Source of the DNA: Thalia democratica | Taxonomy: Eukaryota | Direction: 5' to 3' | Assembly (NCBI GenBank): GCA_965202585.1 | Contig: OZ241826.1 | Location: 100,192,001-100,256,000 of the forward strand | Length of the DNA stretch: 64,000 nt | Shown here: positions 59,366-62,820 of the stretch, piece after piece | Numbering within the stretch: the first letter of the stretch is position 1 | Layout: each line of letters begins with the position of its first letter | Notes under the pieces: generated by a model | Seen by the model: only the letters and a program-made list of their open reading frames with translations | The model's database searches: none | Told to the model about the DNA's origin: nothing | Position numbers and translations under genes: made by a program

Positions 59366-62300
59366 TTTGTTGACTAGTAGATGGACCTATGAAAAAGTTG
59401 ACATTGGTTACTAAAACTCTTGTGCAAACTAGCTTTGAAGTTACAAAAATTACTTAATACATAAAAAATTACTTACTTAGTAAAACTTTTTAAAATTTTA
59501 ATTATTCTGACTAACAATTTTTTGTGACGTAAATAAATCAATGTAAAATGGTTTTATCGTAGTTTGACATGTCTATAAATAAAATTTGTTTGTACCGGTG
59601 TTTTTGTTTCTACTTGATAAAAAATGTTTTAAATTAAAAAAAATCAAGAAAAGATGAAACAGTTTTATAACTATATTTCACAAACACAGCTTAAACTTTA
59701 CGTAACTTTGTCTTTAAAAACACACTATTTTACATATCAAAATGAAAGTGACCTAAATACCTTCTAAAGTGTCGTAGATTGAATCTTCTTTATCACTGTT
59801 GTAACCTTTATGAATAGAAAAACAAATATCAAAGATAAGCATAGTAGTTTTCAAAAACTATAGTTTATAAAAGTTTACTGTTATTTTCATTACAGTTAAG
59901 CAAAATATCATTGTACGCTTTTTGACTTAGTACTATTTTTTAAAAAATGACAAAACGCGATCAACAATTTAAATCTAAGAACCTAGTGTACAAAAAATCC
60001 TCTGGTTATTGAGTCGTACACCACATGTTTTTACAATATATTACGAGCTAAAAAAATAACTTTTAAAGTCTTAATTTTTAAACTTCTACAAACAAAACAA
60101 ACGATAAAAAGATATATGTAATAGTAAATAACAATTTAGACCGTATTGTATATACAATAAAAGAAAACGTAGAAAGTTTGTGTAAAAGTGCAAAATGGTA
60201 TGCAACTAAAAATTTTTTAAAAATGAATTACAATTAACTTAAAAATTTACCATTTAAAGTTTGATGCACTCGGTATAATTGAATGTTTTCAAAATCTAAA
60301 AATAAAAAATTTAAATTTTAGCATTTTTTAATAGTATTTGATTACTAGTATTTTAAAATGCTTAGTTAGTTCTTTGTAATACAATCATAATTAAAAGTGT
60401 TAAAACCTATGAATATAAATTGTGGTGTATAAAGATGTTTAATTAGTTTTTGTTAATTGTTGTTCCTAAAATACTTATCGCCTTTTACATAAAATAATAT
60501 CTAAAAGTATGATTATTATTTAAGTAAATAATTGGAAATAACAACGCTATTTTATTTTAGATTTTGTGTAAATAGTGTAAAATAATTACTTGTATTTTTT
60601 ATATTCACCTAATGTTTAGAAGTATTGTTTTCAACAAATAATCTCGTTTCGTTTCTAGAATTACCCAGTGCTAATTTTTCTGAGTCTAAAAAATAAGTAC
60701 TACTTACATTGTTCTAAAATATATGGTAAAAAGATAACAAAAAGTAGATGTGATAAAAATATATTTTTTTTCTTGTTTGACTAAATTAAAGTTGATTAAC
60801 TCGTAAGCGTACATAGTAAATAAATACATGTTTTACTGATTGAAGTATTTTTAATTGAATTACTTAAAAATTAGATAGTATATTTTAAAGAAACTCATTG
60901 AATATTTTGAAGCAGCTTTGGTACATTATCTAAAAAACAATTAACAATAAACCTTTTAAATTGTAACAACTTATTACCTGATGGTTGTTGCGGTTTTTTC
61001 ATATAACCATTGAGCTGAGAACTCAACAGTCCGTTTTCGCGCTCGAATCTTTTAAAGCTGTAGCAGAAAATTATCATGATAAAAGCAAAAATAACAGCCA
61101 TTATGTACAAAACTGTTTTTATATGTAAACATTGGTCATGGTAACCATCTTTTTGATGTCGAATTTCATTTGGGCAATCTTTTCTACTTTTTAAAGGTTC
61201 ATGATTTTTTTTTTCAACTAAGGGCGTTGGTTTAAGCTTCGTATTTTCGGCTGGGATTTAGGATTTTCAAATATGTATGCTATTAAAAAGTTCAAATGTT
61301 TTATTATGTAATAAGTTTTAAAAGTCTGTGAAACAAAAATATTTTTGTCAGCAAAATATGTAAAACAGTAAAAGAAAAACTTTATCACATTATTAATTAA
61401 CTTTTTACCTCAAATTGTTTCAAAGATCTATTATATTACTTACATCATTAATATTGTTAATAAATGAAGTAAGTATTTTTTCAAGACTTTTATTTTGTAA
61501 TAGTAAGTACTTTAGGAAATTAAACATTTTTTCAAGTGTAGAAATTTAAATACTTTATTATTTAAATTACTTAATAGCAAACTAGGCAACAAAAATTATA
61601 AAACAACAATATACAGAACAACACCAAAAACAATTTACCTCTAGGTTTATTATTTCTCATTCCGCAACCCTTCATCATCCCGGCTCGACCCGTGAACATT
61701 ACAGTGACGTCATAACTGTCAAATTTAAGAGAATTTTTCTAAACTCATGTTCGTTTACAGCTGCGAAGTGCATTCGTATTGCACGGTTTTGTTGTTCTTC
61801 AACACACTCATACCAACGTTATCCTGAGCTATGTGACGTCATAATGACTTCAGCACACTCATACCAATGTTATCCTGAGCATTTGATGTATTCAGATCAG
61901 CTGTAATTATGCTTTATTGCTAACAACCCACGTGACTGTGCTGTGAAACTTTTTAATTTTTTGAAGGTTTAAGTTGCTCAAACTATTTAAACTAGCCGTG
62001 TACATGGGATAAAATTGTTTCTCTTTTCATAACTTTTCGCTAGGGTAAAGTGTTCATCTACTGGATCTACATAGAAGTAGTTGAACCCTTCTATCTTTTT
62101 GCATTCTAGATAAGTGTTTCGATTGTGAATACATACTTTTGTATAAAATTACACTTGAAGCTAAGTAAATTAGATCTACTCGCTAACTACTTCATAATGT
62201 TTCAGTAATTATTTTGATTCAAATTAACGTTGTTTGATGACAAGTGAATAACAAAACCTTTACTTACGTATTTTGTTCATGAAAAAATAATAAAACAATA

Positions 62301-62820
62301 GCACTATAAAAAGTTATTAAAACTACGTAAGCTATTTATCTTCAAATTTTAAACAGTATATGTATTTTTTGATTTAGTTGTAGTTACTACTATAGAGGAA
62401 AAGTCTATAACTAATTTGTTAACAAACTTTTTACCCTCATAAACTAACTTAAATAATTTATCGAATAACGTTATCATTTTAACATTGAAAAACTATATAT
62501 GTTTAATAATTAAGTAGTTTTATTAATTTTTTTTAATTACCCTAAAAAACTTGTTTTTTTTTTATATCTTTAAGTAAAGTACACAACTTATTACTAATTC
62601 TATCAAACAATATAATGAAGTATAAACTTTTTTAATTAAACTCTTAAAACCTTAACATTTTAATAAAGTATATCAAAATATACAATTTAAATATTTGTTT
62701 TAATTGAAGCATTAAACAACAATATAATTTATTTGTTAGCATTTATGTACCTGGAAATATTTCTGCATTTACTCCATAAATAAAAAATGCCAAATATTGA
62801 ACAAAAGTGACCTTTGACAT
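59366..62820 (-). CDS. Type I single-pass membrane protein with phase-1 micro-exons and cytoplasmic tyrosine motifs; 3' end not resolved
   Basis: Model exons, all GT-AG and phase 1: 62751-62820 (MSKVTFVQYLAFFIYGVNA/EIFP, signal-like); 62034(or 62004)-62105; 61865-61900; 60978-61250 (273 nt, TM VLYIMAVIFAFIMIIFCY followed by KR; overlaps ORF track 60895-61110); 60665-60685 (21 nt); 59761-59805 (45 nt, YNSDKEDSIYDTLE); 59366-59386 (21 nt). The ectodomain exon choice is uncertain. Confidence 0.6.
61797..61880. repeat. 33-bp direct repeat flanking an 18-bp filler that contains TGACGTCA
   Basis: Copies at 61797-61829 and 61848-61880 differ at 2 positions. The filler 12-mer gtgacgtcataa is identical to 61704-61715. 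Confidence 0.9.

Follow-up and report, generated by a model that had tools for sequence, protein, structure and literature searches.

Receptors of the vertebrate immunoglobulin superfamily (IgSF) are encoded by genes with a typical exon-phase layout, in which the leader ends in phase 1, and the exons coding for domains, transmembrane (TM) segment and tail are in phase 1 as well. Among invertebrates, the Alr proteins of the hydrozoan Hydractinia make up a clustered receptor family which includes pseudogenes, with divergent tails carrying immunoreceptor tyrosine-based activation or inhibition motifs (ITAM/ITIM); Alr Ig-like domains lack the canonical disulfide and are invisible to simple hidden Markov model (HMM) searches, and a tail exon of 22 bp has been described (Huene et al. 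2022, PNAS, PMC9546547). Judged by analogy of architecture, Alr is the closest described system to the gene family dealt with in this work, no allorecognition role being implied for the latter. The family was met in a stretch of 64,000 nucleotides of Thalia democratica DNA (assembly GCA_965202585.1, contig OZ241826.1, positions 100,192,001 to 100,256,000), called the window from here on. Gene-derived sequence was found on the minus strand of the window, at 62820-59298, by a three-frame read of the region 62900-59300. Comparison with its paralogs makes it quite probable that this sequence is an unprocessed pseudogene of an orphan single-pass receptor family. An original prediction, made from the letters of the window, had described the same region as a functional receptor with a signal-like exon, a small ectodomain, a TM helix and a tail built from micro-exons. 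The prediction is partly confirmed, since the signal, TM and 45-nt exons and the SIYDTL motif stand, while two 21-nt exons and the small ectodomain do not.

The TM exon was compared in six frames to the 801-Mb assembly, in line with the search for paralogs that the original prediction had called for, and five more copies were retrieved (E values from 1e-16 to 1e-24), one of them with an internal TAG. All reside on one chromosome, within 125 kb. The window copy (W) is located at C1 100.253 Mb, the others at 100.260, 100.265, 100.273, 100.369 and 100.378 Mb. The five paralogs are called P2 (L010, plus strand), P3 (L011, minus strand), P4 (L012), P5 (L013, minus strand) and P6 (L014, plus strand). 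No copies beyond the cluster were found when a profile of the TM-exon family was run against the whole assembly. The signal, TM and 45-nt exons are collinear in every copy, as seen by tblastn over ~8 kb around each, and because each exon is conserved collinearly in five paralogs, the gene-derived pieces of the window are far beyond chance. W is one of two decaying copies, the other being its sister copy P4, among the six tandem paralogs which span C1 100.253-100.378 Mb.

The structure of the genes was defined by multiple alignment downstream of the TM exon, and by tblastx comparisons between paralog introns. A model in which exon 1 is joined directly to the TM exon, leaving a short ectodomain, was initially drawn, and was dropped once tblastx had found conserved ectodomain exons in the paralog introns. 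P2, P3, P5 and P6 contain uninterrupted open reading frames (ORFs) of 353, 356, 341 and 324 amino acids (aa), over 8, 8, 7 and 7 exons respectively, with GT-AG at every intron. The exons of the intact genes are the following:

Exon 1, 64-70 nt, ending in phase 1: signal peptide.
Exon A, 115-118 nt, phase 1 to 2: first part of the ectodomain.
Exon B, 296-308 nt, phase 2 to 1: second part of the ectodomain.
TM exon, 297-312 nt, phase 1 to 1: stalk, TM helix and juxtamembrane stretch.
Exon 3, 93-96 nt, phase 1 to 1: ends with EYYMEM or NYVEM (YxxM).
Exon 3b, 45 nt, phase 1 to 1: SEP[VM]Y[GR]TLN, in P2 and P3 only.
Exon 4, 45-48 nt, phase 1 to 1: GYNSDQEEExIYETL.
Exon 5, terminal, phase 1 to stop: GPSTSQQSKIRWKIIGKSKYPVYFNRTAS in P2 and P3, and also in the decayed W and P4.

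The carboxy-terminus of P5 and P6 differs from the GPSTSQQSKIRWKIIGKSKYPVYFNRTAS type. P5 and P6 retain exon 3b in a decayed state, W and P4 lack it altogether, and the exon content of the tail varies therefore between paralogs. The phase-2 intron between exons A and B splits the ectodomain in P2, P3, P5 and P6, and is absent from W, P4 and all the distant paralogs described below. The intron may have been precisely lost in W and P4, or gained once in the other four genes; the base of the cluster tree does not separate the two scenarios. The ratio of nonsynonymous to synonymous substitution rates (dN/dS), calculated over the full length, is 0.18 for P2-P3, 0.35 for P5-P6, and 0.35-0.46 between the two pairs. 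P6 hosts a 100% identical tandem duplication of ~1 kb (L014 ~4861-6960, C1:100.369-100.371 Mb), in which 942 nt are aligned and the copies are 1,044 nt apart; in each of them exon 3b is decayed, and exon 4 is intact, splice sites included. The duplication may be very recent or an assembly artefact, and a second YETL would be gained if both exon 4 copies were spliced.

The pieces of the window copy corresponding to these exons, all on the minus strand, are given below (a slash marks the exon border):

62751-62820, minus strand: exon 1, ATG and hydrophobic signal-like peptide MSKVTFVQYLAFFIYGVNAEIFP, with phase-1 end at CCAG/gt.
61639-62105, minus strand: decayed ectodomain exon, corresponding to A plus B of the intact paralogs with no intron in between, 467 nt, not a multiple of 3.
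60978-61250, minus strand: TM exon, 273 nt, phase 1 to 1, open, inside a 120-codon open stretch.
60590-60685, minus strand: exon 3, 96 nt, phase 1 to 1, with an in-frame TAG.
59761-59805, minus strand: exon 4, 45 nt, symmetric phase-1 micro-exon coding for (G/S)YNSDKEDSIYDTLE, with a YxxL motif, and with a homolog in all paralogs.
59298-59386, minus strand: terminal coding exon, GPSTSQQSKIRWKFIGMSKYPVYFNQTAK, with the stop at 59300-59298 and YFN (a YxN motif) inside.

The signal-like exon of the original prediction is sound, as homologs of exon 1 with a [FY][PS]G/gt end occur in all five cluster paralogs, and also in the distant paralogs of C5 and C10. Equally sound is the prediction of one TM helix followed by KR, as the product of the TM exon comprises a two-Cys stalk rich in Pro and Lys, a single TM helix (VLYIMAVIFAFIMIIFCYSF) and a juxtamembrane stretch (KRFERENGLLSSQLNGYMKKPQQPS) which includes KRFER; the predicted GYMK is also present. 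The exon is 42-57% identical to its five paralogs, and CYSFKRF.RENGLL is invariant. The 45-nt exon was recognized in the three-frame read as the peptide GYNSDKEDSIYDTLE between AG and GT (59805-59761), and its homologs measure 45-48 nt in all the cluster paralogs. In W, P2, P3 and P4 the frame of the terminal exon is maintained, and synonymous differences are seen.

At least seven disabling lesions are carried by the window copy. Nucleotide alignment with P2, P3 and P4 reveals in the ectodomain exon four frameshifting deletions, along with an in-frame TGA and a TAA. The lesions, all on the minus strand and with the deletions defined versus P4, P2 and P3, are:

After 62017, minus strand: 1-nt deletion.
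After 61914, minus strand: 13-nt deletion.
61841-61839, minus strand: in-frame TGA, derived from a 51-nt tandem duplication.
After 61761, minus strand: 4-nt deletion, followed by TAA at 61757-61755.
After 61733, minus strand: 1-nt deletion.
60611-60609, minus strand: TAG in exon 3, replacing the Tyr of the Y[MV][EN]M motif of the paralogs.

As its length is not a multiple of three, the ectodomain exon puts all that follows out of frame when it is included. In a profile search of the genome, the same place is flagged with 6 TGA, 2 TAG and 1 TAA inside the match. Retained introns measure 1500, 292, 784 and 374 nt in a 5-exon model, the 1500-nt one containing the dead ectodomain exon. An exon-intron structure homologous to that of intact paralogs is thus found together with frame-disrupting lesions, as expected for an unprocessed pseudogene. 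With the ectodomain frame and the YxxM tyrosine gone, the copy most likely yields no functional receptor.

The TGA at 61841-61839 deserves comment. Two tandem copies of a 51-nt unit, each containing TGACGTCA, reside at 61779-61880 (minus strand) inside the ectodomain exon, and the junction puts TGA in frame. The unit is present in one copy in the intact paralogs, and in five in P4. TGACGTCA is a palindrome, and the in-frame TGA is brought in by the repeat expansion itself. P4 is broken elsewhere. Its exon 1 has lost 1 nt, stops occur within the five 51-nt units, a TGA is found where the ectodomain exon ends, and the TM exon is interrupted by a TAG. In pairs including W, dN/dS is raised to 0.44-0.73, and in the tree the protein branches of W and P4 are long for their synonymous divergence (dS). 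Exons of W and P4 are 70-85% identical, introns 56-72%. Since exons are more identical than introns, the decay is fairly recent, and both copies would have been constrained for much of their history.

Some considerations weigh against a dead locus. Splicing and silence of the window copy are deduced from the comparison of paralogs only, and its lesions are read from the assembly sequence alone. In addition, exons 1, TM, 4 and 5 remain open and free of lesions, and skipping of the dead ectodomain exon, combined with the use of a copy-specific GT in exon 3, creates an ORF of 165 aa. According to an alternative which we regard as unlikely, the copy could be still transcribed as a short isoform devoid of the ectodomain, in which the dead exon is skipped, and the GT at 60664 is used to get past the TAG. 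The product would be a DAP10/DAP12-like protein made of a ~45-aa Cys-containing stub, the TM helix, and a tail with SIYDTL and YFN. The phases of exon 1 and TM exon are compatible (phase 1), and CTGG/gtaatt is a good donor, found only in the copy which needs it. Yet, the raised dN/dS of the pairs including W does not favor a maintained protein, the TM helix lacks the charged residue typical of DAP12-type receptor pairing, and a GT at a given site is cheap in DNA with 24% GC.

A poorer candidate still, and in our opinion a very unlikely one, is the gene model of the original prediction, that is a functional receptor with a small ectodomain and 21-/45-/21-nt symmetric phase-1 tail exons, ending in an ITIM. 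Pieces with AG/GT borders do exist, SIYDTL fits the ITIM pattern, and the 45-nt exon is authentic. Each of the two 21-nt pieces, however, opens a longer exon whose frame is conserved in the paralogs. The first (60685-60665) corresponds to the first 21 nt of the conserved 93-96-nt exon 3, cut at CTGG/gtaatt, and none of the five paralogs has a GT at that position. The second (59386-59366) is the start of the terminal exon, cut at AAA/gtaaaa, and the frame continues in the paralogs. The terminal exon is open and conserved over 29 codons, with synonymous changes (ACT/ACC, AGT/AGC, ATT/ATA, GGA/GGG, AAT/AAC), and the GT taken as donor at the end of 59386-59366 is GC in P4, a synonymous AGT>AGC change in the continuing frame. 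As the frame is conserved past 59366, and P4 has GC, this is coding sequence and not a donor site; moreover, past 59366 the model is not closed by any stop codon. The small ectodomain, with its Cys and its N-T-S sequon, proved to be a fragment (SIITADLNTSNAQDN...) of the frameshifted 467-nt exon, and the residue at position -2 of the ITIM is not conserved. On the evidence of the paralog alignments, the two 21-nt micro-exons are artefacts, which arose when an ORF was built across a pseudogene.

It may alternatively be supposed that the window gene is intact, and that its lesions are assembly errors, since they are known from the assembly sequence. This seems hardly credible. The seven independent lesions are of differing kinds (1-, 13-, 4- and 1-nt deletions, 51-nt duplication, TGA, TAA and TAG), none falls in a long homopolymer, and the neighbouring P4 decays likewise, sharing the 51-nt repeat with TGA. 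Finally, the idea that no gene family exists, and that we are dealing with chance ORFs in AT-rich DNA or with a repeat element, could invoke the lack of ATG-to-stop ORFs >=110 aa in the window (20-33% GC) and the 24% GC of the region, and is already refuted by the exon-specific conservation across six paralogs and Tara contigs, dN/dS values well below 1, four intact multi-exon ORFs, and the restriction to only ~13 loci in 801 Mb.

Having set these alternatives aside, and retaining the view that the window hosts a pseudogene, the family to which it belongs can be considered. A profile of exon B identified seven more loci in the genome, one at C1 77.39 Mb, three identical ones on C5, and three on C10. 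The superfamily totals ~13 loci, on C1, C5 and C10. In the distant loci a [FY]PG-ending signal exon is followed by a single exon encoding the whole domain, by a stalk-plus-TM exon with a K/R...SEN..L juxtamembrane stretch, and by tails with YxxM or YENI. The C10 paralogs carry 45-nt phase-1 exons coding for ...LALVYENIE and ...DAVIYENIQ, and the 45-nt exon is therefore older than the cluster. In the locus at C1:77.39 Mb (L031, 1982-2842), ~200 aa of KSLAETKK-type, coiled-coil-like repeats are found in place of the Pro/Lys stalk.

Relatives outside this genome are few. The TM-exon profile HMM, run against 1.84 billion protein representatives, matched two proteins only, both ORFs called on contigs of the Tara Oceans marine metagenomes (PRJEB4352), and searches of protein sets with the ectodomain similarly retrieved Tara ORFs only. 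One Tara contig (L025) carries the P3 ortholog, with exons 1, B, TM, 3 and 3b in place. Exons of the two are 85-93% identical, introns 73-83%, and only synonymous changes (GGG/GGA, ACT/ACC) distinguish their exons 3b. The three identical C5 copies, at 23145066, 23316816 and 23352847 (L036, L034 and L035), lie within 210 kb, and the Tara ORF P0006 is identical to them over its full length. This implies that T. democratica, or a very close relative, is present in the Tara samples. No part of the family matches Pfam, and comparison of TM exon and ectodomain to Pfam and PDB sequences gave only sub-threshold noise (DAG1, an apicomplexan microprotein, the TM region of the kappa-opioid receptor). On these sequence comparisons, we regard the family as an undescribed, lineage-restricted receptor family with modular tyrosine-motif exons.

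The nature of the ectodomain was approached by structural prediction, as the original prediction had suggested. AlphaFold2 modelling of the single-exon domain of the distant paralog L031, based on a 15-row alignment, gave nine β-strands with a predicted local distance difference test (pLDDT) score of 73.4 and a predicted template modelling score of 0.74; for exon B alone the pLDDT was 45. When the model was compared to 48,161 PDB representatives by VIA-align, V domains of T-cell receptors ranked first (Z 9.8, root-mean-square deviation 2.8 Å, 101 residues), followed by V domains of CD300lf, CLM-1, MPZ, CD8 and nectin (Z 8-9). The VTW Trp is invariant and recalls the C-strand hallmark of V domains, and the D-V-T-V-Y-F-S/N-G sequence resembles their F-strand motif, D-x-G/A-x-Y-x-C. 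The phase-1 layout of Ig-type genes is found too, as the leader ends in phase 1, TM and tail exons are 1-1, and in the distant paralogs the domain is a single 1-1 exon. We take the ectodomain for a putative Ig-like sandwich, which may represent a divergent V-set domain. Several data tell against this assignment. The Foldseek matches, nanobody and light-chain variable (VL) domains, are weak (E ~1e-3, TM-scores 0.43-0.53), and generic bacterial β-sandwiches match about as well (TM-scores 0.55-0.68). AlphaFold Database clusters and the ESM Atlas returned only generic β-sandwiches, feature searches of the ESM Atlas gave no usable match, and Pfam Ig models do not match the ectodomain. The canonical Ig cysteines are absent, as Cys is missing from the B strand, and Ser or Asn occupies the Cys site of the F strand; other cysteines are conserved. 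A CUB-like ectodomain, suggested by the sequence pattern, found no support in Pfam or fold searches, and was discarded.

The intact genes would encode type I membrane proteins of 324-356 aa, with a signal peptide, a predicted Ig-like domain of ~140 aa, a stalk which is rich in Pro, Lys and Glu and bears a membrane-proximal Cys, a TM helix and a cytoplasmic tail. Topology was assigned by rule, from signal peptide, TM helix and KRFER, and SIYDTL is placed in the cytoplasmic tail because the signal peptide is followed by a single TM helix, with KRFER on the inner side. Each tyrosine motif of the tail would reside on its own symmetric phase-1 exon, YxxM, SEP[VM]YxTL (two genes only) and EEExIYETL, with YFN in the terminal exon of P2 and P3. 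YxxM is present in every copy but that of the window, YFN in W, P2, P3 and P4.

The ITIM proposed in the original prediction is there, in that SIYDTL literally fits the pattern, and is to be resized, in that the fit is private to the window copy. Among the cluster copies only W matches [ILVS]xYxx[ILV], whereas none of the four intact paralogs does, their sequences being P-I-Y-E-T-L (P2, P3) and A-I-Y-E-T-L (P5, P6). The conserved sequence of exon 4 is E-E-x-I-Y-E-T-L, where position -2 is occupied by P, A or T. The V-I-Y-E-N-I and L-V-Y-E-N-I sequences of the C10 distant paralogs fit the ITIM pattern. No family member matches the canonical ITAM, Yxx[LI]x6-9Yxx[LI]. P2 and P3 have YxTL-x12-YETL, and P6 would have YETL-x11-YETL, only if both of its 100%-identical exon-4 copies were spliced in. 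Similarly, the receptor interpretation holds for the family, made of type I receptor-like proteins with symmetric phase-1 tyrosine-motif exons, and fails for the window locus, which is quite plausibly a pseudogene.

In the intact genes, ligand binding by the ectodomain would lead to phosphorylation of the tail tyrosines, and SH2 proteins could then dock, p85-type on YxxM, Syk/Shark- or SHP-type on YxxL, and Grb2-type on YxN. At least 28 SH2 exon matches, distributed on ten chromosomes and including several close tandem pairs, have been identified in the genome, which therefore encodes phosphotyrosine-reading proteins. The signalling role of the tail motifs is putative. A broader scenario may be drawn, in which the ~13-locus superfamily of C1, C5 and C10 constitutes an independent immunoreceptor system, restricted to the lineage of a marine planktonic animal. 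According to this view, a disulfide-less V-like domain would be combined with a portable 45-nt YxxL/I micro-exon, and gain, loss and duplication of tail exons would have generated activating-type (P2 and P3, YxxM plus two YxxL) and inhibitory-type (C10, VIYENI and LVYENI) tails. Thanks to exon skipping and a new donor, the window copy would persist in the form of a DAP10/12-like adaptor devoid of the ectodomain. We hold this scenario, taken as a whole, to be improbable.

Some features flanking the window copy may be added. Upstream of the ATG, at ~30-35 nt, a conserved acag/at...atgtag motif is found in all six cluster genes (at ~62850 in the window). The motif resembles a splice acceptor, and may mark either an intron in the 5' untranslated region (UTR), or a trans-splice site. 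Downstream, a further feature is conserved:

58965-58995, minus strand: conserved block ~320 nt past the stop, gtgaataat in the window copy and AATAAA in two paralogs.

The block likely hosts the poly(A) signal, and the 3' UTR would end there. On the opposite side, at 63418-63999 on the plus strand, an open frame of 194 codons runs off the end of the window. The frame has a weak match to the amino-terminal part of RVT_1 (E 0.034, below cut-off), and is probably a retroelement located just upstream of the pseudogene.

At the window locus the result is corrective, as an appealing model with micro-exons and an ITIM proved to have been drawn across a pseudogene. The family merits record, since it lies outside Pfam, and outside 1.84 billion representatives save for Tara contigs. 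Clustered, fast-evolving receptor families with pseudogenes underlie self/non-self or pathogen recognition in other invertebrates, and the genes described provide a concrete case of ITAM/ITIM-like tails assembled from exon-sized modules which are gained, lost or duplicated.

Three known systems offer terms of comparison. Signalling adaptors such as DAP12, FcRγ, CD3ζ and DAP10 similarly feature a Cys close to the membrane, one TM helix, and a short tail in which YxxL and YxxM motifs are carried by small exons. The 165-aa isoform hypothesized for the window copy, with the ectodomain exon skipped, would resemble adaptors of this group. Unlike DAP12-type adaptors, the intact members have an ectodomain of ~140 aa, a TM helix without acidic residues, and YxxL motifs spaced by 12 rather than 6-8 residues. 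Vertebrate IgSF receptors of the CD300/CLM, CD28/CTLA-4, SIRP and TREM type share with the family the phase-1 layout, and a single domain, of predicted V-like fold in the family, carried by a stalk. YMNM/YMEM resembles the YMNM of CD28, YxxL/I motifs are common to both, and CD300lf and CLM-1 are among the best structural matches. In contrast to vertebrate IgSF members, no Pfam Ig match and no B-F disulfide are found here, and the resemblance concerns fold and architecture only.

The likeness to Alr, loosely evoked in the original prediction, holds as a fair analogy of architecture. No homology to Alr surfaced in the TM-exon and ectodomain profile searches, which gave Tara ORFs only, no direct comparison to Alr sequences having been made. 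The Thalia proteins have one ectodomain module, whereas Alr have 1-3 Ig domains and a fibronectin type III (Fn3)-like ECS; unlike in Alr, the core Trp is retained, and no member has the canonical x6-9 spacing of ITAMs. In turn, both systems consist of clustered single-pass receptors including pseudogenes, with a putative Ig-like ectodomain which escapes Pfam and lacks the canonical disulfide, and with highly divergent tails in which tyrosine motifs of the ITAM/ITIM type are accompanied by very small exons.

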